Assembly: GCA_052426225.1 (NCBI GenBank)
Contig: JBNJNM010000006.1
Coordinates: forward strand, 2,480,001 to 2,544,000
From: Zancudomyces culisetae HAW-14-8
Lineage: Eukaryota; Fungi; Kickxellomycota
Length of the DNA stretch: 64,000 bases
Direction of reading: 5' to 3'
The notes under the pieces were generated by a model, which ran no database searches, was not told where the DNA came from, and worked only from the letters and a program-made list of their open reading frames with translations. The first letter of the stretch is position 1; the number at the start of each line of letters is the position of its first letter. The translations under genes and the position numbers were made by a program. This document shows positions 6,101 through 52,550 of this stretch, piece after piece.

Positions 6101-7492
6101 CACTAAAAATTCAAGAAACACTTGGAATGTACTCTATGTCAGTTGGAATCGTGTTTACTATGGTTTATAGTTAAGCATGTTTAGCCCTGAAGAGGAGTAA
6201 TGAAACAAAATCTACCATTACTAGTAGAAATTTAATTTTTGAGCTTGTTCGCATTGTACATTTGATAAATCAAACCAAGCTCAGGTAGATTAGAGTAGGG
6301 AAAGGTAAAATAGAGTATACCGATACCAGCAGAAATTTACCAGTAATATGAAATGCGAAATGGTATCCAAAAGTATTGGTATTCTGTGCAATAATAACTG
6401 AAACAGTTAAAAAATATATCATGTTATAATTTTTTTCCTAGTGGGTGGCAAACATTTTAAGATGCAACAAATTGTACAAATAACCTATAACATTTTTACA
6501 AGACAAAAGAAGAGAAATCAATGCATATATTTGATCCAATCCGGATTTCAATTACAATTTGAAATTGATTTAAATTTATAAATATATTAATACATGTGTT
6601 ACTACGAGTTTATTGAAGCTATTCTACAATTATTCTAGTATAATCTGTAGAGACAAAGGTTGAAATTTCAAATACATTGAGGAATTCAAAGTTTTTTTTA
6701 TTTTGGCGAAAAAAATCTATATACACTTCAAAATACTCATCATCGAGTATAGTAAACAGTTACGTGCATATAATCATAGCTATAGGTGGTTTGAAAGTAC
6801 ATTTCCAAACGTGACTGAAACATTTTGCATTGTTTATATGAGAACAGAATAAGAGTGGAATATTGTTGCTGATAGCCATAAAATCAATGATAAAATATTA
6901 CTGATATGCTTTTTTAAGAGAATGGCTCGTTTAAGGGCTTGAACTCCAATATTATGGGCAAATAAACACCGTATATTTTAGCGGAAAAAGCTATGCCAGC
7001 CATTTGGTTTGAAGCCTATTTGAGTTTCTATGACTTTACGCAATTTGTGGTTAGAATGAGGGCCAAGTTTGCTGACGAAATAAAAGAATTATATTAGTTG
7101 ATTATTAAAAAGCCAGCCCCAGTAATATCAACGCAAAGAAAAGATGGATGATTTCCCAATTCCGCTATTGTAAAATTATCAACAAATTACTTAAATTGAT
7201 TTAATTTGAAATTAAGCCAACATTAGGTAAATAACGAACATCAAATCAAATACAATTCAAGCTATACAAACACAAAGTCAAAATATGGTAAAATGGCAGA
7301 GTGTGTTTCATAATGAGAGGAGGCAAGTGAGAGGAAAGAGAGTGTAAACGCCCTTTGAGCGTAGAAAAGCCAATATAGCCACTCATGTGAAAGTTTCGGC
7401 TTTTAGTTGAATGGCTTCGCGATCTGTACTAGTTGCAACGGACGTTGATGTTACTGTTAAAAAGTGTGGTTATGCAAAGGGATTAGATCAAG

Positions 7493-7500
7493 TATAAATA
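7493..7500 (+). promoter_or_regulatory. Candidate TATA box of DPP5
   Basis: TATAAATA about 105 nt upstream of ATG 7603; the motif is common in AT-rich DNA. Confidence 0.35.
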
Positions 7501-7602
7501 GCTATCCGTCTTCACCGTTTGCAAGACCTGTTATTTTACTAATTTATTACTTTTAGAACTATTAATTTAATTAAACTGCAGTTTATTGACAAAAAGCTAA
7601 AC

Positions 7603-9711
7603 ATGAAGCTAACAATAGTTTCAGTTTTGGGGCTGATCTCTGTAACAAACGCAGGGATCTTTGACGCTCCACCATCCGATCTTCCAGATTGGAGCAAGGT
7701 CGAAAGATTCACTCCCGACCATTTGTTTGCAATCAAGCGTTTGGGCGCGCTCTCTGTTTCACCAGATAAGAAAAATGCCGTCTATACCCAATGGTTTTTC
7801 AACAGAACCGCAAACAAAGTCGGAACTAGTCTCAGAGTTATGGACATTGCAAACAACTTCAAATCTCGGGACTTGACCACATACAAGGAGGGTCGATCAG
7901 ATACATCTCCAGTCTGGCTGGATTCCGATACCGTAGCCTTCTCAGCAGTTCGTGGTTCACCAGCCTTGAACGTGTTTACTGTAACAGTCTCGGACAACAA
8001 AATAAGCCAGCTGACAAACTTTACAAACAGCGTGTACACTTTGGTCTACAGCTCAGCCGCAAAGAGATTGGCATTTAATTCCGATGTATACCCAGGTTTG
8101 GGAATAGACGAATCCGCAGATAAGGCTGAACAAATGTCTGCCATCCCATACTCTGGCGTTGTATACGACCATTTGTTTGTACGTCACTGGGACACATACA
8201 TTCCAAAGACCAGAGCACAACTCTTTACATTGCCAATTGATAAGGTTGATGGTACATACGCCGTTACAGGAACCCCAGTAAACGTTGCTGCCGGCTATAC
8301 CGGTGCTTGGGGTCTAGAGCCAGTCAGTTTTGTTTTCTCGGCTGATGGTAAGAACATTGCATACGCCGCCAAGATTCCAGGAGTAGAGGAATCATGGTCT
8401 ACAAAGAATGATATATTTGTTTCACCAGTTGACGCATCACAGCCACCAGTAAGCGTAACACCAAACAACCCAGGAGCCTGCTCAGCACCAGCATACTCTC
8501 CAGATGGCAAATACTTGGCATGGTTGCAAATGAACACAAAAGGGTATGAATCCGATAGAAACAGAGTCATGTTGATGGATCTCAGCACAAATCAAGTATC
8601 AGAGGTTGACATGGGATGGACTCTCAGCCCAGGATCACTTAAATTTGCAGAAGACTCAAAATCATTGTTCCATATTACAGGAATTAGTGTTGACAACGCA
8701 CTCTTCAGATACGATTTTGCTACCAAGAAGAACACCCAACTTTCAGATGCAAGCAACCTTGCTTTCTTTGACGAACTCGGTGACAACACTCTCCTCGTGT
8801 TGGCTGCAGCACTTAGCCACCCAATGACCATCTTCACTCTAAAGGCTGATGGAGCCAAGAACAAAGTCAAGGTCTCAACTGAAAATGATGAGTTGTTGAG
8901 CTCTTTGTATCTTACAAATGCATACACATTCAAGTTTACTGGTGCTTTGAACGAACAAGTAGAAGGATACATGATGTACCCATATGGCTATGACCCATCA
9001 AAGAAATATCCAGTAGCTGTCATGATCCACGGTGGTCCACAACAAGCATGGTTGAGATCATTTAGTTATGCATGGAACTCAAACATGTATGCATCACAGG
9101 GCTACTTTACCATCAACATCAACTTCCACGGAAGTCCAGGATATGGACAAGAGTTTGTTGACACTATTGGACGCAACTGGGGCTCATACCCATATGAGGA
9201 TATAATGAAGGGTCTGGACTACTTCCTTCAAGAAGCCTGCGGAGCCGACGCAGATAGAGTTGTTGGATTGGGTGGATCATACGGAGGTTACATGACCAAC
9301 TGGATCAATGGACAAACTGACAGATTTAAGGCTCTTGTAAACCATGATGGCGTTTTCAGTACCGTTGCAGCATACTACAACACTGATGAACTGTGGTTCA
9401 TGGAAAAAGACTCTGGAATACCATGGATTCCAAAGGAGCGCGAAGTGATGGAGCGCTTCAACCCAGAGAGATATGTAGCCAACTGGAAAACACCTATGCT
9501 TATTATTCACGGCGAGTTGGATTACAGACTTCCAATCACGGAAGGTCTATCAACCTTTACCGCCTTGCAGAGACGTGGTGTCGATTCCAAATTGTTGTAC
9601 TTCCCTGACGAGAACCACTGGGTGCTTCAACCATACAATGGATTGCAATGGTTCTCAGAGGCATTCCAATGGATTGGAAAGTATACAAACACTACTACCT
9701 GGACATTGTAA
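7603..9711 (+). CDS. DPP5: Secreted dipeptidyl-peptidase V (S9 family)
   Basis: Signal peptide, beta-propeller region (RHWD; YESDR), IHGGPQ, nucleophile GGSYGG, HGELDYR (Asp) and DENHW (His); intronless. Confidence 0.93.
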   Translation: MKLTIVSVLGLISVTNAGIFDAPPSDLPDWSKVERFTPDHLFAIKRLGALSVSPDKKNAVYTQWFFNRTANKVGTSLRVMDIANNFKSRDLTTYKEGRSDTSPVWLDSDTVAFSAVRGSPALNVFTVTVSDNKISQLTNFTNSVYTLVYSSAAKRLAFNSDVYPGLGIDESADKAEQMSAIPYSGVVYDHLFVRHWDTYIPKTRAQLFTLPIDKVDGTYAVTGTPVNVAAGYTGAWGLEPVSFVFSADGKNIAYAAKIPGVEESWSTKNDIFVSPVDASQPPVSVTPNNPGACSAPAYSPDGKYLAWLQMNTKGYESDRNRVMLMDLSTNQVSEVDMGWTLSPGSLKFAEDSKSLFHITGISVDNALFRYDFATKKNTQLSDASNLAFFDELGDNTLLVLAAALSHPMTIFTLKADGAKNKVKVSTENDELLSSLYLTNAYTFKFTGALNEQVEGYMMYPYGYDPSKKYPVAVMIHGGPQQAWLRSFSYAWNSNMYASQGYFTININFHGSPGYGQEFVDTIGRNWGSYPYEDIMKGLDYFLQEACGADADRVVGLGGSYGGYMTNWINGQTDRFKALVNHDGVFSTVAAYYNTDELWFMEKDSGIPWIPKEREVMERFNPERYVANWKTPMLIIHGELDYRLPITEGLSTFTALQRRGVDSKLLYFPDENHWVLQPYNGLQWFSEAFQWIGKYTNTTTWTL

Positions 9712-21949: not shown

Positions 21950-24900
21950 ATGGTCGATAACTCGGAAATAGCTTTGAAAAGAAAGTCGTATCAGCTGAGA
22001 GCACTAGCAAGAAGTAAAGTTGTCTATCAAAAACGACAGATAGTGGTAAATGTATTTTGTGTGATATTGTGTCCACTGTTAATGGTTACTACGGCAGCAG
22101 TGTTGGGAATAATCTTGAGAAATGTTATTTCAAAGGGATTTGTAGCATCAAGTTACTTGATGTGCGCCAATATCGCCTATACAGACGCTTACAATATGCC
22201 CAGTCCACCAAAGTCACGGAATGATATTCCTGCGGTTTCTGGTGATACTTTCAATCCAAAGTACAGGAACAGAAAATTTAATGTTACAAATAGTTACATC
22301 CTACCAGTGAATGTAGTAGATCAAACAAGAACGTTTAGAATGTTTACGCTTGCGGATAGAACTCCCAGTTGTGCATGGGAGTTTGAACACACTTATTCTT
22401 TTTCATCACCGTATAAAAACGACCCTCGAGTGCCGCTTTCCGTGAGATTAGACACGTAAGTAAAGCTCTATATTACAGTTGAAATAAATACATTAAAAGT
22501 TAGCATTTCTTTCTTAATCATAATAAAATGCAATATTCAATACACCCTCAATTAGGACAGGAAAACCTGAGCCTCTTGGTGGATGGTTCGGGCAAGGTTT
22601 TCTTGCAAACAATGTAGTGAAATATCTCTTAAACCAGAAACTTCACTGGTCGTTGGTTCGTGATTCCCCAAATGGTCAGGTAGGACGTCTGGGGAAAGTG
22701 GAACCGATTCCTCTTTCGGTTTCATCGATTCTTGACACCAATAACTCCAGCATCTCAGGGATTCAACAGATTATATCCAGCGACAAAGTCCAGAACAGTT
22801 TAAACTCTAGAAACTCGACAGGAATATTGGGAGGTTTGGACACCAATTTTTGGATGGGTGTTGGTGAGCTAAATGTTGCAGGGACCAGCACGTATGCACC
22901 AAATAAGTTAGTTGCAGCACCGTGGTTTGACACGATGAGTTTTGACAATACCACTACGCTAGAAATAGACGCAAGACTAAAGGATATCATCACCAATGTA
23001 AAATCCCAGCTTTCCGATATTGATCCCAGTGAGTTTTATGTTTTGGGTTTAAACCCAAACAACCAGAACAACAGAAACCAAATGCTAAGATACTTTTCAA
23101 TTGTCGGACGTATACTGGAACTAGTACCTTGGGGTGCAATCATTTTTGATGAAGCAGACAACGAAAACATGCGCTGGAAGTACACGTTACAGACAGGCAC
23201 CAACTCTCAAATAAGTTCGGTTGGCTTATTTCCTGAAACGATAGATAGAATGATAGTACAACAAACACAGCTAGGAAATGGGCTATTTAGAGCAGCTAGC
23301 AATGATCAGGGTGCTACAATATCACATGGGCTATTAGCAATGCCACAGGCATTTTTTCAAGGCTATAGAGTGCCTATAAGTGCATTAATTGGAGCTCTAT
23401 TGAACCCTCTAGGAATATCCTCGCTAATAGCTGTATTCACACTTATGCTTGTCAAAGAAAAGGAAGCACGAATTGTGGTGTTGATGCAAATGAATGGACT
23501 TAAACTTTACACATATTATATTGCAAATTATGTCCATTTCCTCATCCTTTCAGTTTTATGTTTCTTTTTCTTTTTGGTGGGAGGATATGCATTTAAATTG
23601 GAACTCTTCACAAAGACAGGCAGTTCAGTACTAGTATTACTGCTTTTCTTGTGGAGCAATGTCCAAATCGCGTTGGCCTTTTTCTTTAGTTCGATATTCA
23701 AAGGGAGCCGCTCGGCATTTGTAATAACCTACCTTGTGGTTATTTGGAGCGTAGGAATCAACAATGCGATTTCACAGATCATACCCACTGGTGTGCCGTT
23801 GGCATACCTTATCTGGCCTCCATTTGCAGCCTTTAGGGTGTTAGATTTACTGAATGGTGCATCTATCTCAACCATTAGACCTGCATACACACTTTCAGAC
23901 ATTGTGCCAGGCGATGAGGTTTTTTCTTGTCTCATGGCGCTCCTTATTGGTTGGTTTGTGTATCTCCTTTTGGCACTGTACCTCAATCAGGTTTTGCCAT
24001 CGGAATACGGGATCAAAAAACCATGGCATTTTTTTATTTCAGACTTTTTCAGGAGAAAAGACCTTGAAGTAGCGAGGTTGGGTGCGCTTGATAAAACAGA
24101 GCTAGAATATGAGGATGTCTATGTTAAAAATGAGAGAGAAAGAGTAATGAACGGTGAATACACAAAAGATACGCCATTGGTATTTAAGGGACTTCGTAAA
24201 ATTTACCCAACAGGAAAGCTTGCTGTAAAAGATGTCACACTTGCTGTTGACAAAGGACAAATTTTCGGGCTCCTAGGACCTAATGGTGCCGGAAAAACGA
24301 CAGTTATTTCCATTGTGTCTGGAATGTACAAACTGAGTTCCGGAACAGCAAAAATCGCAGGATTTGATATAAATACTGAAACTGCGCAGGTCTACCGTCA
24401 TATTGGCATATGTCCCCAACACGACATTCTTTGGGATAACCTTACTGTTTCGGAGCATCTTTATTTTTTTGCAAGATTGAAAGGCATATCTCCGCAAATG
24501 GAAAAAAATGTAGTAAGCAAAGTAATTGCCAGTGTGGACCTGAAAGAGTTTGCTGAAGTGGAAGCAAAGCATCTTTCGGGTGGACAAAAGCGCAGGCTAA
24601 GTATAGCCATTTCCTTTGTGGGAAATCCTACAGTTGTATTTCTTGATGAGCCTACAACAGGGTTGGATCCTGAAGTACGCAGAACTGTTTGGAAAGTTAT
24701 AGAAGATGGTAAGAAGGATAAGACCATTGTCATCAGCACACATAGCATGGAGGAAGCCGAGGTACTCTGCGACAAAATCGGAATAATGGCTAAAGGAACC
24801 ATGCGGTGTCTCGGATCACCAGTCGAGCTCCGCCAGCTTTATGGAAATGGATATTTACTTTCGGTATATACCAAGTCTCAGCATATCGAAGATTGTAAAG

Positions 24901-25127
24901 AGTACATTGGCAGGTTATTAAAAAATAATGGGAGAATCATTGATAGTTTCTCTAATATTATAACTTGGGAGTTTAGCACACAAACAGGGTTCTTGTCCAC
25001 CATATTTAGAGAGCTTAGCGTAAACAAGTCCGCCTATTTTATTGAAGATTGGGGGATCAGCCAGACCTCGCTAGACGAAGTGTTCTTGAGGGTCATAGGT
25101 GAAGAGGATGCTGATGCCTATGAATGA
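21950..25127 (+). CDS. Half-size ABCA-subfamily transporter (copy A); intron 22456-22555
   Basis: TM1, large exocytoplasmic loop, LVKEKE..MQMNGL, further TMs, one NBD (GPNGAGKTT, CPQHD, LSGGQKRR, LDEPTTGLD, THSMEEAE) and C-terminal SLDEVFL. Confidence 0.92.
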
Positions 25128-34572: not shown

Positions 34573-35304
34573 TTTTGCACTTTATTTTTACCTCTTTCCG
34601 GTTCCAATCCCTTTCGTATTTCCTTTGCTTGAAATTACTCTAAGTTGTATACAGGCATTTCGGGTTTTGAAAAGCCCTAAATATCAGTTAATTTTCTTGA
34701 GGTTTTGTAATTAATTTCCCAGTCATTTTTTACCACTTAATTTGAATTTGTCACCAGAAATTTGAGTGTCACAAAATTGAAGGAAAATTCACAACCATAT
34801 TTCAGTAAATCAAGCACAGATCTCAGTTAAGTAGGGGGAATGGGAGTGGGAGTGGAAGGGGAAGGCATATAAGTAAGATAATAAAGAGTAAATTAGCACA
34901 GGAATTTAGTAATATATTTGTAACAAGAAGGGAGATTGCTCAGGTATTTACTGAGGACACACTCGGGTAAACACCTTTCATGTGAAATGATAATAGCAGG
35001 TAGATTTCTTGGTGATATAGACTAGTCGGGTTTCATAGTCAATTTTTTCTTTTAGCAGAATAAAGGTATAAACAAAAAACATCAAATATATAAGCTTTAT
35101 TGATATAGACAGGTGATTTAAAGTAGCAGCTAAATCCCATTTTTTTTGAAAAGAATATATCCGAGTTTGGGATCAGCGTTAACTATCACTGTTAACGAGT
35201 AAATGTTATTAAATAAAGCAAGTTTTAATATCAATATATTTTGGATCATCACACATCATAAAATTAAAATGTTCAAATAAAATATACATATTAAACATTC
35301 ATCA

Positions 35305-35332
35305 ATGTTGTATGTTGTATGTTGTATGTTGT
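35305..35332 (+). repeat. (ATGTTGT)x4 heptamer array next to TATAAA in the promoter (also 44246-44273)
   Basis: Read directly from the sequence. Confidence 0.9.
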
Positions 35333-35468
35333 ATAAATCTCCACACTCAAATATAAATACTTGTTCAACTTTGCACTTGCTACATTTTATTTCTACACTA
35401 ACATACAGCAGCTGGTAAAGAAAGCATTTATTGAAAAAAAGCAAAAACTAAAGAGTACATGTTGAAAA

Positions 35469-37398
35469 ATGCGAGCAAGTGTAAAGATACTGTTGAGTGT
35501 GGTGTTGTTTGTCATACTTGGTGTAGGTATGATGCAAAAGGCCAGCGCTTTTACACTACCAACTCTAAAGTTAGTGGAGATAGGAAATCAAAACGAAAAC
35601 ATTTTGAAAATCGACTTGTTTGGGAATAAAGACTCGACAGGGATCTCGGAAAAGCGGAAAGATACAAAAACAACCACATCAACCACATCAACCACATCAA
35701 CCACATCAACTAAATCACCAAATAAGCCAGATAAATTAATCACATCCTCAACCACATCATCAACATCCTCAGAATCAACTACATCAACTACATCAACTAC
35801 ATCAACTACATCAACTACATCCTCAGAATCAACTACATCATCAAATACATCCTTGGATTTTGCGAGAATTTCAGAATCTCAAAATTATTTGATCTCTTCA
35901 TCTACAACAACGCATCCTGTTTTTAGCTCCGTTTCTAGCTTTACAAAAAATAATTCGCGTTACTCTACCTTTTATTCATCTCAAAAATACTCAACTAAGC
36001 ATATAACCCAAAAATGCAATCCTAAAGTTTCTAAATCCAAAACTCGAGAATGTAAATCTGCTACCCTCAAAACTAAAACAAAAAAGTATAAACCTACAAT
36101 CTCTAAAACGAAGTCGCCGAAGTGCTCTCGTACAAATCCCAAACAGTCTGAACTTCCAACTTCTAAAATGTGGTGTCACAACAGATGTAAATTCAACAAA
36201 CATGAAAACCGTAGAAATAATGGTGATGGCAGAGATGATAGGAATAACAGGAATAACAGGGATAACAGGGATAACAGGGATAACAGACAACGTCCTACTA
36301 AAACAAAATTACCATTCAACAAAAATTACCAAAATCATGGCTCTTCTCGTCACAAGCTTTCTCTAGATCATATAAGGTATAATATCAACTCTGAATACTC
36401 TGACAGATTTAGGCATGAAAAACACAATGATGATGGTAGAGGTGGCCACAAGTTTAAAAACCACAATAAAAATGTCCATAACCACAATCAAAAAATCAGT
36501 GATAAATCTAGCAATCATGATAGAGGTGAGTAGCGTGCAACTCTATTTTGACACTATTTGGTGCTATTTAGTACTATTTTTGAGTTTTAGAGCATATAAT
36601 ATATAATTCACTATATAAACAATACCGTAGCTTATATAATCTTATTTTCGAAGATATATTATAAACATCTTTTATAACTACACGTTAGGACATGGTCGAG
36701 AGTACTATGATGGTGATAGCGAGAGAAGTCGAGCAAAATCTAACAGGAATCATAAAGATCACAAAAACTATAGCATCCACAAAAACTATAGCAACCATAA
36801 AGACAACAAAAACCACAAAAACTATAGCAACCACAAAGACAACAGCATCCACAAAAACCACAAAAGCTACAAAAACTACAAAAACTACAAAAATGAACGC
36901 CATAAGCACCGATACCAGGATATAGAAATAGATAAACACCTATTTGATCATGTTAATGATGACGAGTATTTTGATCATAGTTATAACCATGAGAAATATC
37001 ATGAGTTTGGCCATGGTCGGGATCATCATCCATCCGAAGAAAGCTATGATTGGGCATCACCGGATCGGTTTATTCCCTGTGGTGTATATCGTACACAACT
37101 AGGGGATTCATGTATTTCAATTGCTCGCGCAAACAATATTTCCGTACAGGATATCTATGAATTTAACAAAAATACAAGAAAGTTTCATGGATGTGAAAAT
37201 ATACATACCGGAATACACATATGTATTTCACATGGAACCATGCCAAGAATAGTTGATTCAACCCAGGTATGTGGTGAAGAATCGCCAGAAAGGGCAAGGT
37301 GTCCGGATTATCAATGTTGTAGCGAGTGGGGACAATGTGGAGTGGGAGAAGGATTTTGCGGGATCAACGGGCAGAAAAAGTACAATGGGATATTCTAG
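35469..37398 (+). CDS. Secreted LysM + CBM18 (hevein) chitin-binding protein, Thr/Ser-rich form; exons 35469-36525 and 36689-37398 (588 aa)
   Basis: Signal peptide; AGAG|gtgagt...tag|GA splice; exon 2 ends CGVYRTQLGDSCISIARANNISVQDIYEFNKNTRKFHGCENIHTGIHICISHGTMP (LysM) and CGEESPERARCPDYQCCSEWGQCGVGEGFCG (CBM18). Confidence 0.88.
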
Positions 37399-39453
37399 AA
37401 TATGTACATTACAACAGTACTATACAACTGGTAAACTTGTATTCTCTTCTCAGATCGTACTCAAAAAATGTGACTAGTGGGCTGGTATATTCAATAAACA
37501 CCAACACAAAACCAACATTATTTCCATCTAACTTTTAAATTATCAGTGTATTACAAACTAATTTCTCCCCAGCGTTGATTATTCAAGAATACCTGTCATT
37601 TTTTTGAACTATAAAGGAGATCATCATTAATCGGGGACTTTTGTAACCTGTCTAATATGCACCTTGTGCTTACCCCCTGAATCTCTAAAAGACACTCACT
37701 AATTACTCCTTTTACTTTTACCACTGATATCTTTGTTATAGTTACCGCTATTTCACAAGTCCATACTATACTAATCATCGCATACAAGCTAAAAATGCAC
37801 CAAATAATTTACAACTAATTTCATCAACACAACTAGCTTAGATTTAAGTTATTGATGTTTTTGTTAACGAGCAAGCCAAGGTGACATACATATAAGTGGT
37901 GTATTACTAGATAATATCCTTGAGTTTACGCTTTTCCATCTGAAAGAAATACTATCACATAGTCTCCTCTTATTAAAGTAGAGCAAAAATAACTACACTC
38001 ACTGATAGGGTTATGAATATCTATAAATTGGTATCATTTTTAGTTTACGTATACCTGCTTGTGTTTCACTTTTTCAACATTGTGATTTCTCACTGAAACA
38101 CATTTTGATGGAATTTTTGTTATTCAGTGTATACGCGTTTTAACCCCACAGAATCTATGTTTCTTACAATTCGCATCATTGTGTCTTTATTCTGAATCAC
38201 ATTTATTAGGTGAGTTTCATTTGCTGTCTCTTGCTCTTGACACTTTTTTTTTGGTGGAGAACAAATTTCGCGGATGTTTGTTATACTTTTTTTTGATAGC
38301 TTTGGTTTACCTGGTACTAAAAAGATGAAATAAAAAAGAGCAAAAACCGAAACGTTTTGTTGGTTTACTGAAGAAAGTCTGGCTTTTTATGTTATACCTT
38401 TATTTGTGTAAAGCCCCAGTTCCTTCTCAAAGTATTAGGAGCCTACAACGGAACCGCAGCTATTGCAGACTTGCTTTGATACACCGCTTTCTATTTGTAG
38501 GCTGTGATGTGGTGAAGTATTTAAAATTAAAACTAGGTTTCAGATTTACAGGAAAAGTAGTATCGTATCACTTGGAACGACTTATCAGACAACGATTCAG
38601 CTTTAATCCTAGTTTTAGCTTTGATTTTTGTTGCACCAGAAAGTATGCTTCAGTAAACCACAAACGAGAAAGTGATGTTTTGCTTGCCCAATAATTTTAA
38701 CTACTCTGCACATGATTTAAAGACAACAGCAGCCGCAAAAAATAACAACCCACAACAATAGCACTAGCGCTGTACCAAGTATGATAGTTTAAAATGTACT
38801 TGAAAAGTATAGAAACCCCAACATTAAAAAGCCCAACACAAAACAACACTACAATTTGAGGTACAAATAATGAGCTGAGAAAAAACAGACTTTAATTGGG
38901 CTAGCTATTCTTTTTCTGTATACTGGGACGAGTTAACTTTAAACTCGGCTAAGTTATCTCGACAATGAATTGTTTTCCAATGATATACTTGCTTTTAAAG
39001 CGTAAACAGAAAAAGAAAGTATTTTACAAAGTTCATAAACTTTATGTGAAGCTCAAGGTTAGAACCAAGTCTTGCGATTATTTGAGTCTAGCATATCTAT
39101 ACACGTTTGGATATTATCCACACTATGTATTTAATATTTCTAAATCGTAGAGTATCTTTAAAACGTTGAGTTATGTTTGTACAAACCCGCAGTAGAGAAC
39201 TTTAAGGGATACTAACAATAATACTGTCAACATCTTTATAATAATTCACTAGCCTTTTCTTTTAAAAACTCGCATTTGTCTTCTTAAGTATAAAGGGATC
39301 CATCTATAAGAGCAATCAACAAAGTAATCGGCTTCACATACAAAAACAACTGAATAAAAAAAGAAAAACAAAAAGAAAAAGAAAAAGTGAAGGGTATAGA
39401 CTTGCTTTAGAAAATAGAGCCTGGTAACACACAACAAAAAGCTTTGAGCCACA

Positions 39454-42400
39454 ATGAGGATAGATGAACATAGTACTACACTGGAATCGAGTAAAATAAT
39501 ATTTGATTCATCGCACAACATTAACAGAAATTATGGGCAAAAAAGAACTTTTCAGATTAGAGCACTGGCCAGAAGTAAAATTAGTTATCAAAAACGGCAG
39601 TACCTTATAAATGTGTTTTGTGTAGCGCTATGCCCGTTTCTGATGTTTGCAGCAGGTGGAATAATAACCATGATAGTGCGAAGTGTAGCTCAAACTTTGA
39701 ATTCAGAACAAAACTATTTAATGTGTTCTAACAAGAACGCATCAGATATATTCAATATACCTATCAATAACTACAGCAAGGAAAAGTTACCGATGGTACA
39801 GGGCATTGAAGCTCCAAACCTTCCAAAAGATAAAACAGTTTATCATCTGAACCACTATTTGCTACCTATGAGTATAATCGATACAGATATTTCCAAAAGC
39901 GGCGCACTATCGATAACCGATCGATCACCTAGTTGTGTATGGCAGTTTGAGCACAGTAGTTCCTTTTCATCGCCATACGAGATATCACCAAACATTTCAG
40001 ATGCATTAAGAAGAGATTCGTAAGTTATTTTTACTACTACAAATATCTCCAAAAGAAAGTTAACACACTAAAAAAAAATCACTGATATATCTTGATGGAA
40101 AAGTTTTACACCGCACTCATGTCTGTAAAAGCAAGTATTGACTATATTGTTATAACCAATTTCATTAATTATAGAACTATGAAGCCTGATCCGGCTGGTG
40201 GCTGGTTCAATGTGAAATTCCTACAAAAAAACTTTCTAAAGTTATTATCAAATCAAAAAAGTCAGTTTGTACTAGTTCGAGATTCAACAAAAAACAATGC
40301 AGGTAGTAGAGTTGAACGCCCGTTACTAGTGTTAAATGCGCCAGAGGGCTCAAATCTTTCTGGAACTATCATTCCTGATATTGAATCAATTTATTCTTAC
40401 GTGATGCTGGAGGATGTAAAAAGTTCACTCGATCTTAGGCTATTGAACCAAATAAAAACCAACTTTTTTATGGATGTCAGTCAAGACAAGGAAGCCGAAA
40501 ACGCAATAGTAATAAATGGGCTGAAGCCGGTCCCTTGGTTTGACAATATAGGAGCTGAAAACAGCGGCCCAAGCATTGACGATACGATCAAAGCATACAT
40601 ACTAAGCTCCAAGGATAGCGTTATCACAACGAAAAGGCAGATTGAAGATTACGTAAAGGAGGCACAAGCATCAAGAGCAAAAAAACTTAGTCAGGTCGAG
40701 GTTCTTTTCAAATATTACGAAAAATTGGCGCCTATAATAAATAAAATGCCATGGGGAGCGCTCCTTATGGATAAGATAGATCCAGAAAATAGCGAGTGGC
40801 AATATACTATGCAGTTTGGAGAAGATAGAGATATCTCAATTCTGGGGTTGTTTCCTTCGCTTATGGATAGATTAATAACCCAACATACACAACTAACCAA
40901 TGCGTTTCTCAGAACATCGCTAAAAGATCCAAGCGCAATGCTATCGCATGGATTGAGAGCAATGCCACAATTCTTTGACAACAGTTTGCAAATACCAATA
41001 GGTGGATTTGTGGGTGCTATCCTTTATCCCTTTGGCGTATCATTTCTTATTCCTATATTTGTAATGATTCTTGTAAAGGAAAAGGAGAGCAAAATAATGA
41101 TTATGATGAGGATGAATGGAATAAGAACGTTGTATTACTATTGTGCACACTATATTCATTTTTTTGTGCTTTTCTTGTGGTCAACTCTCTTTCTAACATT
41201 ATCGGGGTACATTTTCCGCACAGAGTTGTTTACTCGAACAGATCCTTCTGTGTACATTACCTTACTCTTGCTATGGAATAATGCGCAGATCACTTTATCA
41301 TTTTTCCTGAGCACGCTGTTTAAAAAAACCAGAACTGCACTAACAATATCGTGTTTATTGGTGATCTGTAGTGTAGTTGTTAATACAACAGTTAATATGC
41401 AATCTCTGGATAACATGTCCTTTATGTATCTGTTGTGGCCTCCATTCGCTATGTATAGAGCACTATACCTGCTCAACATTTCTTCAATGTCACTAGAAAA
41501 ATCACCATATCAGCTTTCTGATTTGAAACCACACGATGGCGTCTTTAATTGTTTCATGGCACTTGTTGTCGCTTCTGTGATCTATCTACTTCTCACAGTA
41601 TACTTTGGTAACGTACTGTCTCAGGGATATGGAATAAAAAGACCCTGGTATTTTTTTCTACGCCCCTTTAACAAACGCAGAACCCTACCTGGTTGTGGCG
41701 ATAGGAATACAGAAATTGATCTCGATAAAGAGGATGAAGATGTGAAAAACGAAAGACTAAATGTAGAGGAGAATCTTTACTGTCAATCTTCTCCTCTTGT
41801 ATTGCACAACGTTCAAAAACGCTATAAATCCGGGAAATACGCTGTAAAAAATGTAACAATGGCTGTAGAAAGCGACTGTATATTGGGGCTCTTGGGACCA
41901 AATGGCGCAGGAAAAACGACACTAATTTCAATGTTATCGGGATTACATTCCATGACATCTGGGAGTGCCAAACTTGATGGTTACGACGTCGGTTCATTTA
42001 GCTCAGAGATATATTTTAGTTTTGGTATATGTCCTCAGCATGATATCCTGTGGGAAGATTTGACAGTTACTGATCATTTATATTTTTACGCACGACTAAA
42101 GGGAATTGAGCCTTCAGAGGAAAATGATCATGTAAATTTATTGCTAAACAATACAATGCTGTATAAAGTCAAAGAGAAACTTGTAAGACACCTATCAGGG
42201 GGCCAAAGGCGAATGTTGAGTCTAGTTATTTCTTTTATCGGAAATCCTCGTGTTATTTTTCTAGACGAACCTACAGTAAGTATACTATCAGTGATATTAT
42301 ATTTATAATATTTCTAACAATGTTTGTGTTATTTGTTATACGAGTAAGCAACAGAATAATAGATTAATATCAGTAATAATCGAATGTTATAATTAGACCG

Positions 42401-42879
42401 GGCTGGACCCTGAATCGCGTAGAAGTATATGGGAGTTAATAAAAACAAACAGAAAAGATAGAACAATTGTTATAACAACGCACAGTATGGAAGAGGCGGA
42501 GGTTCTATGCACAAAAGTAGCAATTATGCAAGATGGTGTGATGAGATGTATTGGGTCTCAGTTAAGGCTAAAAGAGCTCTATGGGGGCGGATTTTTGTTG
42601 AAAATATCGTGCGAAACAAGTTATTTGGACCAAGCCAGAAAATTTATTGATAGTTTCCTCCCAAAGGATTCTGAGAATATTGAAACTATGTTTAATACTT
42701 CAACATGGTCATTTAATAACCACAGCGGGCTAATCCCCAAAATTTTCAATGAGATAAAAACCAATCAATCAATGTATCATGTTGATAGCTGGTCAATCAC
42801 TCAAGCCTCGTTATATAAAGTGTTTTTGAAAGTCATTGAAGATCCGAGTATTACGGAGGATAACGAAAGCATATATTAA
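39454..42879 (+). CDS. Half-size ABCA-subfamily transporter (copy B); introns 40020-40174 and 42276-42396
   Basis: Same architecture as copy A (RALARSK..YQKRQ..NVFCV.LCP; LVKEKE; GPNGAGKTT; LSGGQ; LDEPT|TGLDPE; THSMEEAE). Confidence 0.92.
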
Positions 42880-44409
42880 ACCCATCAGTATCCTTAGATA
42901 TGAGAAATGAGTAGTTTTCAATAATATGTAGAGTAAAGCAATCATTTTTCCTTTAGAAACCGGAGTCGCATATTTATTTTTTATTAACGGGGTATTTGAC
43001 CAAATAAATTTCACTTTACCACTTAACGGGAAAAGTGTATATTCTCTATTTCAAAGTACAAGATTATAATCTCGGGAGGGGGATATAGTTTATATGAGCA
43101 AAAACCCATTGTGTGACGTATCGTTTAAAACATAGAGTACGCAGAAAAATTTTAACGCTCCCGTATCAAGTGGCTGAGTAGAATTATTGGAGGAAAATCA
43201 TAAAGACCGGTCACCTTGACTTCAAGGGAGACTGAAGCCAAAATACCATCCCTAATCTAGCTAAACATAACTAGCTTTTTGGGTAAAGTCTTTCCATTTA
43301 GGATAATTACATTTAATCGACTCAGAGCAGAGGCGATCTCCTTGAATCGACACCCGGTAAATATAAAGCTAAGAGGGACGAGGAGTAATTAGTTAAATAG
43401 GTAGTGTGTAAGATTATTTGTTTTGTAGTATTTTATGAATAGTTACTAAATAGATTCACCAAGAAAAAAAAGTGGCTAGGAAGTTGGAACCACTATTCGT
43501 TACTTTTCAAAGAAAAACGAATATATACGACCAAATCTGTTCTTGCAGTTGTGTACACGGCTATTTCTGAAAAATAGGTGTCATAATATATTTACAAAGG
43601 CACTATAGTACATACAATTTATCCAATTAGGTTTAATAAATATAGCTACTAAAAAAACATAGCGATTCAGCTTTTTACAAGCCCATTACTAACAACCATA
43701 GAAAATGTTTACTTTTCTGATATCCGGCAAAAGAAAACTAGATATTCACATTGTGAAAAAACAAATTAAAGCCATTCAAAATCGCTAACATCCGTTTAAT
43801 AAGGAGAGGAAAGAAGAGTAATTAGATGAACACAATTAAGCAATAGGGCTGATGAAGGTGGAAATTGCTCATATAAACTATTGCCCGTTATATATCAAGT
43901 TTATAAATAAAAACTTATAATCAACATTAGTTCGAAAAAACGTTGAGAAGAGGACATCTTATTCAAAGTTAATAAAACACGCTATGTTGACACTCAATCA
44001 ATTGTAGTTTTAGCAGCGCAACACATTTGCTGGAAGATGAAAAGCTTATTTAATTTAAATAGCTTATAACAAGTTGAATCATAAACAAGAAACATCCTGG
44101 TATATTAAATTGAATGAAACTCGCTCAGTATCTTTGTAAAAGAGTAATATTAAATAAAGCAAGTTTTAATATCAATATATTTTGGATCATCACACATCAT
44201 AAAATTAAAATGTTCAAATAAAATATACATATTAAACATTCATCAATGTTGTATGTTGTATGTTGTATGTTGTATAAATCTCCACACTCAAATATAAATA
44301 CTTGTTCAACTTTGCACTTGCTACATTTTATTTCTACACTAACATACAGCAGCTGGTAAAGAAAGCATTTATTGAAAAAAAGCAAAAACTAAAGAGTACA
44401 TGTTGAAAA

Positions 44410-47400
44410 ATGCGAGCAAGTGTAAAGATACTGTTGAGTGTGGTGTTGTTTGTCATACTTGGTGTAGGTATGATGCAAAAGGCCAGCGCTTTTACACTAC
44501 CAACTCTAAAGTTAGTGGAGATAGGAAATCAAAACGAAAACATTTTGAAAATCGACTTGTTTGGGAATAAAGACTCGACAGGGATCTCGGAAAAGCGGAA
44601 AGATACAAAAACAACCACATCAGATATCGAGACAGGAACAAATGTAGGACCAGATGGTGATGGTGATGCAGATGATACTAAAACCACGGATAAAACCAAA
44701 ACTAAGGACGGGGATAAAACCACAGATAAAACCAAGACTAAGAATGAAAATAAAACCAAGACTAAGAATGAAGATAAAACCAATGCTAAGGACGGGGATA
44801 AAACCACAGATACCACCAAGGATAAAGATGAAGATAAAATCAAAAACGAGGATCAAGATAAAACCAAAACTAAGGACGAGAACGAGGATAAAACCAAAAC
44901 TAAGGACGAAGATAAAACCAAGACTAAGGACGAGGACGAGGACGAGGATAAAACCAAAAATATGGACGAAGATGAAGATAAAACCAAAGATAAAACCAAA
45001 AACGAGGATCAAGATAAAACCAAGACTAAGGACGAGGACGAGGACGAGGATAAAACCAAAAATATGGACGAAGATGAAGATAAAACCAAAGATAAAACCA
45101 AAAACGAGGATCAAGATAAAACCAAGACTAAGAACGAAGACGAAGATAAAACCAAAACTAAGGACGAGAACGAGGATAAAACCAAAACTAAGGACGAGGA
45201 TAAAACCAAAACTAAGGACGAGGATAATACCAAGACTAAGGACGAAGACGAGGATAATACCAAAACTAAGGACGAAGATAATACCAAGACTAAGGACGAG
45301 AACGAGGATAAAACCAAAAATAAGGACAAAGATAAAACCAAGACTAAGGATGAAGATAAAACCAAGACTAAGGACGAAGACGAAGATAAAACCAAAGATA
45401 AGGATGAAGATAAAACCAAGACTAAGGACGAGGATAAAACCAAAACTAAGGACGAGGATAATACCAAGACTAAGGACGAAGACGAGGATAATACCAAAAC
45501 TAAGGACGAAGATAAAACCAAGACTAAGGACGAGAACGAGGACAATACCAAAACTAAGGACGAAGATGAAGATAATACCAAAACTAAGGATCAAGATAAA
45601 ACCAAAACTAAGGACGAGAACGAGGATAAAACCAAAAATAAGGACAAAGATAAAACCAAGACTAAGGATGAAGATAAAACCAAAAATAAGGATGAAGATA
45701 AAACCAAGACTAAGGACGAAGACGAAGATAAAACCAAAGATAAGGATGAAGATAAAACCAAGACTAAGGACGAGGATAAAACCAAAACTAAGGACGAGGA
45801 TAATACCAAGACTAAGGACGAAGACGAGGATAATACCAAAACTAAGGACGAAGATAAAACCAAGACTAAGGACGAGAACGAGGATAATACCAAAACTAAG
45901 GACGAAGATGAAGATAATACCAAAACTAAGGATCAAGATAAAACCAAAACTAAGGACGAGAACGAGGATAAAACCAAAAATAAGGACAAAGATAAAACCA
46001 AGACTAAGGATGAAGATAAAACCAAAAATAAGGATGAAGATAAAACCAAGACTAAGGACGAAGACGAAGATAAAACCAAAGATAAGGATGAAGATAAAAC
46101 CAAGACTAAGGACGAGGATAAAACTAAAAATAAGGAGGAGGAGGAAGATAAAACCAAGACTAAGGACGAGAATAAAACCAAGACTAAGAACGAGGATAAA
46201 ACCAAGACTAAGGACGAGAATAAAACCAAGAGCGAGGATGAAGATAAAACCAAAACTAAGGGTGAAGATAAAACCAAAACTAAGGACGGGCATAAAACAA
46301 CACGCACTAATAGTTACCCATCATATTCTACGCAAAATTCAAGTAAAACTAAAAATAAAACTAAAACTAAAACACGAAAGTGTAAACCCACAATCTCTAA
46401 AACGAAGTCGCCGAAGTGCTCTCGTACAAATCCCAAACAGTCTGAACTTCCAGCTTCTAAAATGTGGTGTCACAACAGATGTAAATTCAACAAACATGAA
46501 AACCGTAGAAATAATGGTGATGGCAGAGATGATAGGAATAACAGGGATAACAGGGATAACAGGGATAACAGGGATAACAGGGATAACAGACAACGTCCTA
46601 CTAAAACAAAATTACCATTCAACAAAAATTACCAAAATCATGGCTTTTCTCGTCACAAGCTTTCTCTAGATCATATAAGATATAATATCAACTCTGAATA
46701 CTCCGACAAATTTAAGCATGAAAAACACAATGATGATGGTAGAGGTGGCCATAAGTTTAAAAACCATAATAAAAATGTCCATAACCACAATCAAAAAATC
46801 AGTGATAAATCTAGCAATCATGATAGAGGTGAGTAGCGTGCAACTCTATTTTGACACTATTTGGTGCTATTTAGTACTATTTTTGAGTTTTAGAGCATAT
46901 AATATATAATTCACTATATAAACAATACCGTAGCTTATATAATCTTATTTTCGAAGATATATTATAAACATCTTTTATAACTACACGTTAGGACATGGTC
47001 GAGAGTACTATGATGGTGATAGCGAGAGAAGTCGAGCAAAATCTAACAGGAATCATAAAGATCACAAAAACTATAGCATCCACAAAAACTATAGCAACCA
47101 TAAAGACAACAACAACCACAATGACAACAGCATTCATAAAGACAACAGCATCCATAAAAACCACAAAAGCTACAAAAACTACAAAAACTACAAAAATGAA
47201 CGCCATAAGCACCGATACCAGGATATAGAAATAGATAAACACTTATTTGATCATGTTAATGATGACGAGTATTTTGATCATAGCTATAACCATGAGAAAT
47301 ATCATGAGTTTGACCATGGTCGGGATCATCATCCATCCGAAGAAAACTATGATTGGGCATCACCGGATCGGTTTATTCCCTGTGGTGTATATCGCACACA

Positions 47401-47701
47401 ACTAGGGGATTCATGTATTTCAATTGCTCGCGCAAACAATATTTCCGTACAGGATATCTATGAATTTAACAAAAATACAAGAAAGTTTCATGGATGTGAA
47501 AATATACATACCGGAATACACATATGTATTTCACATGGAACCATGCCAAGAATAGTTGATTCAACCCAGGTATGTGGTGAAGAATCGCCAGAAAGGGCAA
47601 GGTGTCCGGATTATCAATGTTGTAGCGAGTGGGGACAATGTGGAGTGGGAGAAGGATTTTGCGGGATCAACGGGCAGAAAAAGTACAATGGAATATTCTA
47701 G
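44410..47701 (+). CDS. Secreted LysM + CBM18 chitin-binding protein, (EDKTKTKD)n form; exons 44410-46828 and 46992-47701 (1042 aa)
   Basis: Same signal peptide, intron and LysM/CBM18 exon as copy 1, with a central 540-aa charged repeat. Confidence 0.88.
44680..46299 (+). repeat. Coding minisatellite: 24/30-bp units encoding (E-D)1-3KTKTKD, with 102-bp and 342-bp higher-order duplications
   Basis: Read directly: the NMDED marker recurs 102 bp apart (about 44961/45063); the KDQD marker recurs 342 bp apart (about 45589/45931). Confidence 0.95.
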
Positions 47702-48086
47702 AATATGTACATTACAACAGTACTATACAACTGGTAAACTTGTATTCTCTTCTCAGATCAAACTCGAGATCTATTAACCCCAAAATCACATTGTGGTCAG
47801 ATTATGTGTCAGGATTATGCTTTTTGTTCCATTTTATTTGATGGTCTGGTTAATTTAGTGTTTAGCCTTGTGAGCGTTTTTTAATAGACTTATTGAGTAT
47901 ACATTGATAAAACTTCATTTTGGACCGCATAAAAATTGTTGGTATCAATGAAAGCTAAATTATTCTGGACTACGTTCTCTAGCCAAAAATAAACAACATC
48001 ATCCAAAATACCACTTCGTTACAAAACAAAACTCATATAGATTACTATTCCACGCAAAAAAAAAGTTTAAACATCAATTAACGAAT

Positions 48087-50583
48087 CTATAGGTCGATCC
48101 GTTCGACCATTGTGGTAATATTGGAATAAATCTTTTCTGAAACCGTTTTGTTTCCTGTTACGATATTTATCAAATCCGTCAATAGCTCATAATTTCCAAG
48201 CATGCCAAGGTGGTCGACAAGCTCTGCACCTCCCCCTATCCCAAGCCCTTTTATGAAAGAGACAGGTTTGGAAGGAAGCTCTCGAACGACCACTTTAACT
48301 CCGTGGGGGTTATATTTTTTACTTTTCCAACCTTTCGCTCCCATCAAACCTAGTGATAGAAGTGATACCGTTCCATCTCTATTTGAAATATATAAATTTT
48401 GCTGCATCAAAATCCGAGCTTAAAATTCTAGTGGTATTATTTCTCTAAAACAAGTACAAAAACAGGACTTACCCATCCGAATATGTAATGCCCGATTCTA
48501 TCACTCCTTGTGTGTTTTTATTATTGTTGACCACATATTTCATAACATCAACATCTGACCCATCTTCGAGATAATTTTGTTGTTCATCAAATTTTGGGTT
48601 GAGTTTGTAATGATACCCTCTTTCGGCAGGTATACCAACTCCATAAAAATTATAAATGGTCATGTTTTTTGCGTTGGGTAGTTGGTGAGTAAGTGGGTTT
48701 ATCCATGTGCTTGAGTCATACTTGTGTTTTTCAAATTCCGAAGTTTGATTAAATGCTCCAAAGTTATTGCTTTCTAAAACGTTTTTTCTTGTGACTGGAT
48801 CAAGCATTTCCAGCAACATGTTCAGTGATTGTTCGACATCTAGAAAACGGGTATCACCCAACTCACCCTCGCCGGTCTCTCCATAAATATTTAGAAATCT
48901 TCCAAATGAACCCACAGAAGATGTATTCACAGTAGATACCCGTCCTTTTCCAGCTTCCTGCTCTTTCTTAGCAGAAATATCGATATTAATGGCAGAAATA
49001 TCATCAGGAGCACTATCTACTCCACCCCATACCTTCACACCGCCCTTGGGCAGCATTGCTGAAAATGATCCCCAATTGCGAAACAGCTTCGCGCGCTCTG
49101 CTCTACTCATATAGTTTTCAAGCAAATAGCTAACAATTGGTTGTACAGATTCTTTTTGTTCCCCTGAGAATAAGCTTGAAAATGCCTTTGGTGTTCCTAG
49201 GAGGGGTCCGGCCAAATTTGCCCATGATTCTATATGGTCGTTGACCCAATTTTCACCACCATTTCCGTGTGCGGGGGATCTGACCCAATTCAGGAAATAC
49301 ATTGCTACCAAACCACCTATTTAAAAAATGCAATCAACTTTAAGACTACTATTCGCAATGGAATGAGGTGGGTTTTCATAAATATACTTTTTTTACTTAA
49401 AGATTAATGCAAGTTACCCATTGAGTGAGATATCAAGACGGTCTTTTCTCCCAGGACACTTTTATTCATTTCTATGCGATGCTTCATCTCGGAAAAATAT
49501 TTATCGCGTGCTTGTAGAGAATCCATTTTCAATCTCCAGTCATACGAGGCCATGAACATATTAAAATTATCATAGCCAACGGTCGAAAAGTTTTCAATAA
49601 TTTTTGACCATAACCAGTATCCTGTCATAAAATAATCCGCTGCTTCGAGTCCCTTGGCAACACGCAGTCTAATACCTGGGGGGTCCATTCCAGTTCTTGG
49701 GTCCAAAGACATGTGCTTTAACCAACATTTTTTATCAGATAATAATGCCTGTACCATTGCTATTTAACAAGTAAAACGTATTAGACTATTCCTTTTTTCG
49801 GAGAATAGGCTTGGTCTGGATAAAATAGTAAATTCAGGTTATAAGAATTGTCTTACTGAAAGTTCCCCATATTCGCTTTCTAAAGTAGGCCTGAAAACCT
49901 CCTGTTGTGCTCCAATTCTCTAAACCAGACGTTATAACACCAGGGATTAGCACAACTGGATGTTTAGGCTTCAGTTTGTTATCGCGCATCATGCTTTTCG
50001 CAGGCTCGAACGTTTCTTCGGTTACCTTGGGTGTATCTTTTTCATCTGACTTTAGTAGCTTGTAAATTTTTGTAATGTTTTCTTCTGAAAAATATTCTGA
50101 GGGTAATTTTTGCATAAACTCCCATTTTTCTCCAGAAAGATACTTAAACTTGTTCTGCAAATCTTTAAATTTCGAATCCACATCCTGATTAAAATAGGCA
50201 AAGTATGCACTAATTAATATTCCCAAAATTATGCCAAATGATATCCATTTGGTTTTTTGGATATTTCTTGCTCTTACTGTTATTGCCTGTTTTGAGTTTG
50301 AAAGGCTTTCTATGACACTGCTCAGCTTTTTTTCTAATAGTATATATTACAGATGTTTTTGTCTCAAAAAAAGATACAAATACCAACAACAAAAGAGAAA
50401 GGACAGTGCGTTTCACAAATGTAATTTGAAATGTACCTGCTTTTGATTTTAACCGATTTTCTATTTTGTTTTTTTGTCTGTTTCTCACTTCGCCACCCTC
50501 TTTCGATTTGCTTCTACCGAAACCTAAAATGTATTGAATTCAATTCAATTCACATGTTTATATTTTATTTTATGGGTACACAT
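48087..50583 (-). CDS. LRO1: Phospholipid:diacylglycerol acyltransferase (LCAT family); multi-exon, start codon uncertain
   Basis: N-terminal TM; HPVVLIPGVITSGLENW..FRKRIWG; CWLKHMSLD..GYWLWSKIIEN..YDWRL; SHSMG; DG|DGTV; DH. Confidence 0.92.
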
Positions 50584-52550
50584 TTTTGGGTTGATGTTAT
50601 ACATATGATGAATTTTTAAGTTTTTGATCTAGCTAGGATTTCGAATTACTGTAGAGAAAAATTAAATTAAATTAAAAGATTACTAGCTTACCTGAAGGCA
50701 TTTTCTTAAATACTCGAAAATTTAAAGGGCTATTCTAGCTTTAGTTTATCGTGAGGTTTGAATTGCTGTGTATAAATTAACAGAGAATCATACACTTCAT
50801 AATCACAAAAAGTAATATAACTGATATTCTCTACAAACCCTTAAAAAAAAATTCGTCTATTGTTGATAACAGTTAGCCAATCGCATGCTAGAAATCAGAG
50901 TTGGTGCTTTACCTGATTTGTACGATTAATGAGTGGTAATTGAGCCAGAGCTGATCAAACACATCGATAGCCGATTGTGTTGAAAATCGGAAATATCCAC
51001 TTGACATATTTCTGCTAAAATAGGAAATGAAACCGAATTAACTACTTCTCATGTAAGTCTAGCTATTTGTATCTCTAATGCAATATATTGCAAAAACTCG
51101 ACACTTTACATGCCATTGATTTCAGAAATCAATCCATGGATATACTACAAGGATCCTTATTTGATGTCAAAAAAAAAACGATACGTGATTGACTTTTCTA
51201 GGTGATGGTTTGAATAGTTTTTGCAATAGTTTACGCATCATAAGCTTAACTTGATAAAGAGGCCGTGTATTATGAGAATAATCACGGAATACTTGTTAAA
51301 AGTTGTTAGGCTTTGAACTGAGAAATGTTCGAGGCAAAGAAATGACGTGCTAACAGCTTATGTTAGTATCACACCACACATTGTTTTTTTCCGAACAATT
51401 TTCAATCTGATATTTTCACTGATTGTGGTAGTAGACTTACAGTCATAGTATTTGTTGTTTAGCTTTTAAGAAAAAGATAGTATATCGATTATACGAGTAA
51501 AAAAAAACACCTTGCTCTATTGTTATCTCTGATTGTGAACAGGATACCCGGTCATATTGGCTAGTAGGGTCGGGTTGGTCCATTTTTATATTTGTATCAA
51601 CTAGAAAATGCAACTGAATTTTCACTCCAGTACAGCTGTTAAAAACTCCCAAGAACATAATTACTTTGATTGAAAGGTAAATAGACAACACTGATGTTAA
51701 GGCAGAAATATTTCAATTATTCTGAACTTGTGCCAGTGAAATTAATATAATTTTTGAATTTTCCCAGTGGTATTTTTGCATTATTATAGGTTGCTGACTA
51801 CTACTACTAAAAGTTTATTGTCCTAACCAAGCACCATAAAAAAAGACCTCCCTGCAAAGTTACAAAGTGTACAGGGAAAACAAGTACAAACACTGCTCTG
51901 TATTTTTTTTTCTGAATATTTTCAACCAAAAGCCAGCCAAGATGGCCAATAATAATTGCTGAAGCACTAGCCAAAATTGTATTGTAATTTAAGCAGTGGA
52001 AAATAGGTCTTTAGCTGAGTAAATATTTGTAATCAGCTTTTAAGTGGTGTAACTATGTTGGGTTGGGGGTATGGCCAATGGACAAGGGGTTACATATCTA
52101 GCTCCCATTGTCCAGTTTTCTGTCGAGTCAGCCATTGGTTTTTAAACCCAGGGATTTTATATTTTCTTTCTCCCAACCCACGTTTTAAAATCCGTTTTTT
52201 TTTAATGAAATTTAATTTAGGTTTTTCAAAAGCCAGATTAAAGTAGAACATGCCAAATATCTCGGGTTGAAAGAACTAACAAATATGCTATACTAATGGA
52301 CTGATACATAACAAGCAGGCACTAGGTACTAGATATTCACATATTCCCTGTAACTAAGAATCTATTTCGGACACCATACACTAATCTACTAAGATTAATC
52401 CGCTTTATTTTTGTTGTTTTTTCTCATCTACTTTTCAATTAAAAAGAAAATAAGATCGTATGCCTTTGAGACTTTTTAATATAAAGCAGCAACTCGATAG
52501 CAAAAGCAGAATATAATCACGTTGAAAGCTTATAGATCCGCGAAAGTACA

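Follow-up and report, generated by a model that had tools for sequence, protein, structure and literature searches.

Probable gene conversion between the ends of two predicted chitin-binding paralogs with divergent middles in Zancudomyces culisetae

Two tandem paralogs of the mosquito-gut fungus Zancudomyces culisetae HAW-14-8 probably (at roughly 85%) undergo patchy, non-crossover interlocus gene conversion in their 5' and 3' blocks, have middles that diverged in place, and would encode a pair of secreted chitin-binding proteins. The genes lie within a 64,000-nucleotide stretch of contig C6, called the window here. Conversion of the termini had been suggested by a sequence-only reading of the window as one of two possible origins of the pair, the other being a module swap after a recent duplication. 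Conversion is now strongly supported, both by polymorphisms shared between the loci and by patchy tracts in which paralogs are closer to each other than alleles are.

The two genes are 6.7 kb apart with a unique spacer between them, and share one architecture: a signal peptide, a low-complexity stalk, a LysM domain and a hevein (CBM18) domain. With the two exons of each gene joined in frame, the predicted protein of copy 1 is 588 aa long and that of copy 2 is 1042 aa (Table 1). By exact extension the 5' block is identical in the two copies over 475 bp, 262 bases upstream and 213 downstream of the ATG. In copy 1 the upstream part of this block holds an array of the heptamer ATGTTGT, and codons 1-71 encode the signal peptide and a KR site. 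The intron is also identical, reading GTGAGT...TAG in both copies, and the 3' blocks differ by 28 substitutions (~2%) and one 9-bp RDN unit. The LysM-CBM18 module has the same protein sequence in copies 1 and 2, and the flanks do not align past the blocks (shuffle p 0.17 and 0.71). The matching blocks and intron, the identical module and the unique flanks had been read from the letters before, and that reading held. The shared 3' block of copy 1 reads as a mosaic of conversion tracts.

Table 1. Features of the gene pair and its spacer, in window coordinates.
Feature	Position	Strand	Description
Copy 1 shared 5' block; putative conversion tract	35207..35681	+	262 bp upstream + codons 1-71
Copy 1 exon 1	35469..36525	+	
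Copy 1 middle, 134 aa	35682..36068	+	TTS repeats, then S/T/K-rich with 12-aa Cys-containing units; basic
Copy 1 shared 3' block	36069..37456	+	N/K/H/R/D-rich linker, intron, exon 2, 57 bp past stop
Copy 1 predicted intron, 163 bp, GT-AG	36526..36688	+	In-frame join; exon 2 under purifying selection
Copy 1 exon 2	36689..37398	+	LysM ~37078-37224; 6-Cys hevein/CBM18 ~37270-37377
ABCA-family transporter gene	39454..42879	+	In 6.7-kb unique spacer; not part of repeat
Copy 2 shared 5' block	44148..44622	+	
Copy 2 exon 1	44410..46828	+	
Copy 2 middle, 585 aa	44623..46362	+	~64 DKTKTKDE-type units, higher-order blocks
Copy 2 shared 3' block	46363..47759	+	
Copy 2 predicted intron, 163 bp	46829..46991	+	
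Copy 2 exon 2	46992..47701	+	LysM ~47381-47527; hevein/CBM18 ~47573-47680

In a DNA search of the genome, both terminal blocks hit C6 twice and contig C12 twice, and neither had further copies elsewhere. Neither exon 2 nor the shared linker gave matches in word searches, a length-limited result that does not imply absence. C12 and the window are colinear for 40 kb or more, with the same gene order and the ABCA gene kept, and the duplication between the two contigs covers at least window positions 1-9000 and 21550-61618. The two contigs differ by 154 SNPs in 34,158 unique bases, a background of 0.45%. This lies within the heterozygosity of 0.41-0.75% given for diploid Harpellales (PMC5954228), so we read C12 as the homologous haplotype of the window; if it were a segmental duplication instead, the conversion test would be unchanged. 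Window positions 1-9000 are almost identical to C12:374550-383549 (16227 of 16231 bits) but the contigs are ~0.45% divergent from 22 kb on, and this shift may mark the edge of a region that lost heterozygosity, or else the place at which the assembly merged the haplotypes. At window positions 50500-51000, in otherwise unique DNA and beside two indels, 13 differences between C6 and C12 are clustered in 500 bp.

A further haplotype comes from another strain (GCA_001969505.1), in which the ABCA protein sits on a 9,259-bp contig that covers the 3' end of copy 1 and the spacer and extends into copy 2. Only the 3' end of its copy 1 was recovered. The same order with the ABCA spacer is therefore seen in three haplotypes, an unchanged flanking arrangement of the non-crossover kind. 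The NCBI protein for this strain's copy 2 stops at the intron and so is without the chitin-binding exon.

The four copies in the HAW-14-8 assembly are labelled A1 and A2 (window copies 1 and 2) and B1 and B2 (C12 copies 1 and 2), and copy 2 of the other strain is labelled C2. Without exchange, A1 would be closest to B1 and A2 closest to B2. In the 5' coding block, A1, A2 and B2 are identical, with B1 set apart by 9 of 213 bases; the same three are identical in the intron, where B1 differs at 4 of 163. At 36096-36525 the relationship changes: B1 and B2 are identical (0/430), whereas A1 and B1 differ at 12 of 430 bases. From these tracts it follows that the perfect identity of the two copies across the 475-bp block, like that across the intron, is specific to the window haplotype. 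The 11 differences in the 475-bp block have a Poisson probability of ~2e-5 at the background rate, yet ~1% of unique-DNA windows reach that count.

Five sites, one of them within the RDN repeat, group the sequences by haplotype (A1A2|B1B2), and none groups them crosswise. Across the five sequences and 1188 aligned bases, 17 sites are polymorphic at both loci and 1 is a fixed difference, where independent mutation would be expected to give ~0.04 shared polymorphisms. The 17 include sites from the short-read second strain, whose terminal blocks are possibly a chimeric consensus that inflates the count; the long-read assembly alone gives 4-5 such sites, so the result does not depend on the short-read assembly. 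C2 carries variants found at locus 1 in the HAW-14-8 genome, and some shared variants lie 40 bp or less from a locus-specific middle. An excess of shared polymorphism between paralogs is an accepted signature of interlocus gene conversion (PMC4467073). Since the variants move both ways, individual tracts are given no direction.

As assembled, B1 carries a premature stop in codon 71, where the shared 5' block ends, and HAW-14-8 may thus be left with a single intact allele of copy 1. Codon 71 is also variable in the other strain's copy 2.

The middles behave quite differently from the termini. That of copy 1 is 28% S and 26% T with a net charge of +11, and that of copy 2 is 30% K, 24% D, 21% T and 13% E with a net charge of -40. 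The sequence-only reading had called them unrelated. This stands for their full length, which aligns no better than shuffles, and is slightly too strong for their 3' ends, where the last ~30 residues show weak homology (protein p ~0.01, DNA p ~0.001, for segments picked post hoc in sequence of biased composition). Around ~36015-36160, copy 1 has four 12-residue units across the 3' junction, three of them with Cys at position 4, and copy 2 keeps only the last two of the four. The copy 2 array is 585 aa in the window and 593 aa on C12, with higher-order blocks rearranged between them, and 273 aa in the other strain, where the short-read assembly may have collapsed repeats. All 81 genome matches of the DKTKTKDE DNA unit fall inside copy 2 on C6 or C12, and the whole-genome search found no donor of the repeat unit beyond the copy 2 locus. 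Locus 1 has a TTS-type middle in haplotypes A and B, and locus 2 a DKTK-type middle in A, B and C, a small sample.

One could instead suppose that a recent duplication was followed by a one-off replacement of one middle by an unrelated module, or that the loci actively switch cassettes. Over most of their length the middles do not align, their 5' junction is sharp at codon 71, and the flanks are without homology past the blocks, all of which would suit such a replacement. We nevertheless hold it to be very unlikely. The weak homology at the 3' ends of the middles argues against an unrelated module, and a recent duplication alone does not yield 17 shared polymorphisms. In cassette-switching and antigenic-variation systems silent donors would be expected, and the genome searches found none: the repeat unit and the blocks occur only at the locus pair. 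Such systems also have alternative middles at one locus; here each locus has kept one type of middle throughout the haplotypes seen, two for locus 1 and three for locus 2. The module swap proposed earlier is thus left unsupported, and a historical one-off replacement of one middle, followed by conversion, keeps only a small residual chance.

Near-identical blocks are prone to collapse, and the second-strain contig both begins and ends inside repeats, so the pattern could in principle be an artefact of assembly: a misjoin, a tandem placement of two alleles, or bleeding of the consensus from one near-identical repeat into the other. This is even harder to credit than a replaced module. Two contigs of the HAW-14-8 assembly show the same tandem order, and so does the independent assembly of the other strain. 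This refutes both a misjoin and a single locus with two alleles, one of the outcomes that the sequence-only reading had named as fatal to its proposal. The homogenised tracts are reciprocal, with A1 equal to A2 in some and B1 equal to B2 in others, and variants that within HAW-14-8 occur in A1 or B1 alone are found again in the other strain, which marks them as real alleles.

Patchy, non-crossover conversion of the termini remains the preferred reading, and a simple history can be proposed from it. By the sequence evidence the 5' and 3' blocks exchange DNA patch by patch, and the two loci thereby share a single pool of variants. The middles seem too divergent to pair, so each stays with its own locus and changes by expansion and contraction of its internal repeats. 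The simplest reading is that they diverged in place after the duplication and are now too different for conversion. The duplication itself is no longer datable from the termini.

The predicted proteins carry LysM (PF01476) and Chitin_bind_1 (PF00187) above the Pfam cut-offs in exon 2, and exon 1 has no Pfam family match and no Atlas match. The database searches used the exons singly; the joined models served for length and composition, with the stop in the C12 allele read as X. In a hydropathy scan the only strong hydrophobic stretch is an N-terminal peak at residues 3-22, and the C-terminus is polar (hydropathy -0.69) with no GPI signal, so both products seem to be secreted without a membrane or GPI anchor. 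The LysM domain, as described for copy 1, has the four-cysteine pattern of the fungal type (PMC4392113). An alignment with wheat germ agglutinin shows six cysteines in the hevein domain, without the last cysteine pair, and Gln at one of the three aromatic binding positions. Neither copy has a GH18 domain, the protein ending ~11 residues after the hevein domain. All five variants of the LysM-CBM18 module across the five copies are synonymous (p ~0.003 or less), which supports translation of exon 2.

Judging from these domains and compositions, the proteins would most likely serve in a coat or an adhesive matrix that is anchored to chitin. Once secreted, they would bind the chitin of the fungus's own wall or of the insect gut lining through their C-terminal module. 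Their disordered stalks would build up a hydrated coat or an adhesive matrix, the copy 1 stalk being basic and the copy 2 stalk polyampholytic to acidic. The proteins might instead act like LysM effectors, as shields or as scavengers of chitin oligomers against host or microbial chitinases. We regard this as possible, if on balance unlikely: it concerns function only, and secretion and a LysM with the fungal four-cysteine pattern and no catalytic domain are consistent with it. Fungal LysM effectors have a compact layout with multiple LysM domains, unlike the single LysM and hevein domain on a low-complexity stalk of 400-900 aa found here, and the length of that stalk differs between strains. 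A more specific version of the coat or matrix role is that the pair forms a spidroin-like, two-component holdfast glue of the Harpellales, in which the basic and the acidic or polyampholyte stalks co-assemble on the chitinous gut lining. Conversion would then be favoured because it keeps the promoter, N-terminus and chitin anchor matched. This is a speculative idea, to which we give a low probability; if true, it would provide a molecular handle on gut-fungus attachment.

In a search of 1.8 billion representatives, the best relatives of the module were 37-44% identical, at most 44%. A GH18 motif lies downstream in 59 of the 111 full-module matches, and the module thus resembles the front end of a subgroup C chitinase minus the enzyme. 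The pair shares the adjacent LysM and CBM18 with subgroup C GH18 chitinases and the zymocin alpha subunit (PMC4392113), and is unlike them in lacking GH18 and in having its stalk N-terminal to the module. Fungal LysM effectors are defined as secreted proteins with LysM and no catalytic domain (PMC4392113), a definition that the predicted products match.

Of the best 150 among 761 matching proteins above threshold, the only one with a similar long-stalk architecture was a gene at C15:1410953-1414249, which is no evidence of absence elsewhere. Like the pair, this gene encodes a signal peptide, a low-complexity stalk, a LysM and a CBM18 at the C-terminus, with no enzyme domain. It differs in its module (37% identity), its Q/P-rich stalk and its 8-Cys hevein domain. 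The DNA searches did not match it, so it is too distant for the conversion pool. Its module is identical to that of Z. culisetae OMH79098.1 (NCBI 'Killer toxin subunits alpha/beta'); that model, named as a killer toxin subunit, is 240 aa long and shorter than the C15 gene. A separate 630-aa open frame at C15:632243-632911 has three LysM matches and no CBM18 match.

Matches on C24, a 116-kb contig, lie at a spacing of 26,032 bp and in both orientations. The unit read there has intron-less open reading frames for a family B DNA polymerase, pieces of RNA polymerase subunits, an SF2 helicase and a D5-like ATPase, and also encodes a 1149-aa protein with B-lectin, LysM, CBM18, GH18 and NucA-NucB domains. 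The unit resembles a virus-like element of the fungus. An origin of the pair from the C24 element or the C15 gene is not claimed, the window sequence being on a long unresolved branch of the module tree.

The product of the spacer ABCA gene is 100% identical to a Z. culisetae protein over the aligned part. The gene has a paralog 17 kb away, at 22617-25127, and a third lies on C11. A joint duplication of the pair with the ABCA genes was rejected: the spacer gene and its neighbour are only 42% identical in amino acids, and so cannot date the chitin-binding pair. The spacer gene is bracketed by repeats yet kept in all three haplotypes.

The closest analogue of the pair is found in the spidroins, where intergenic conversion homogenises the termini that surround distinct repeats in the MaSp paralogs of Argiope (PMC9779670), as conversion-homogenised termini would flank divergent repeats here. 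Unlike spidroins, the pair is fungal, encodes an unrelated protein, has two copies only and carries a C-terminal chitin-binding module; the likeness concerns evolution, not co-assembly. A comparison with the yeast FLO and Candida ALS adhesins had also been drawn, and it fits for recombination and fails for architecture. Ectopic recombination has been described for the FLO genes (PMC3512402), and the pair likewise has a secreted, surface-type protein, a repeat-rich stalk of variable length and recombination between paralogs. The N-terminal signal peptide of FLO and ALS has a counterpart in the hydropathy peak. Central S/T-rich tandem repeats like theirs are present in copy 1 only, copy 2 being built of K/D/T/E. 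Their binding domain is an N-terminal lectin or Ig-like domain, whereas that of the pair is a C-terminal LysM-hevein module; the pair also has no GPI signal, and it is the termini that are exchanged, with the repeats left out. The view that this is an undescribed system does not survive these precedents. It is well supported that a known process acts on an undescribed gene pair, which is not a member of the FLO/ALS, subgroup C chitinase or cassette-switching groups.

The analysis answers the evolutionary question in favour of conversion of the termini rather than a module swap, and provides a compact, well-controlled fungal case of ongoing interlocus conversion whose tracts are sharply bounded. 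It also corrects the public gene model of copy 2 in the GCA_001969505.1 strain. For the glue that holds Harpellales in the insect gut, a fasciclin protein has been proposed (PMC5954228). Based on their predicted features, the two chitin-binding proteins may be reasonable candidates for that glue, as one set among several in the genome.
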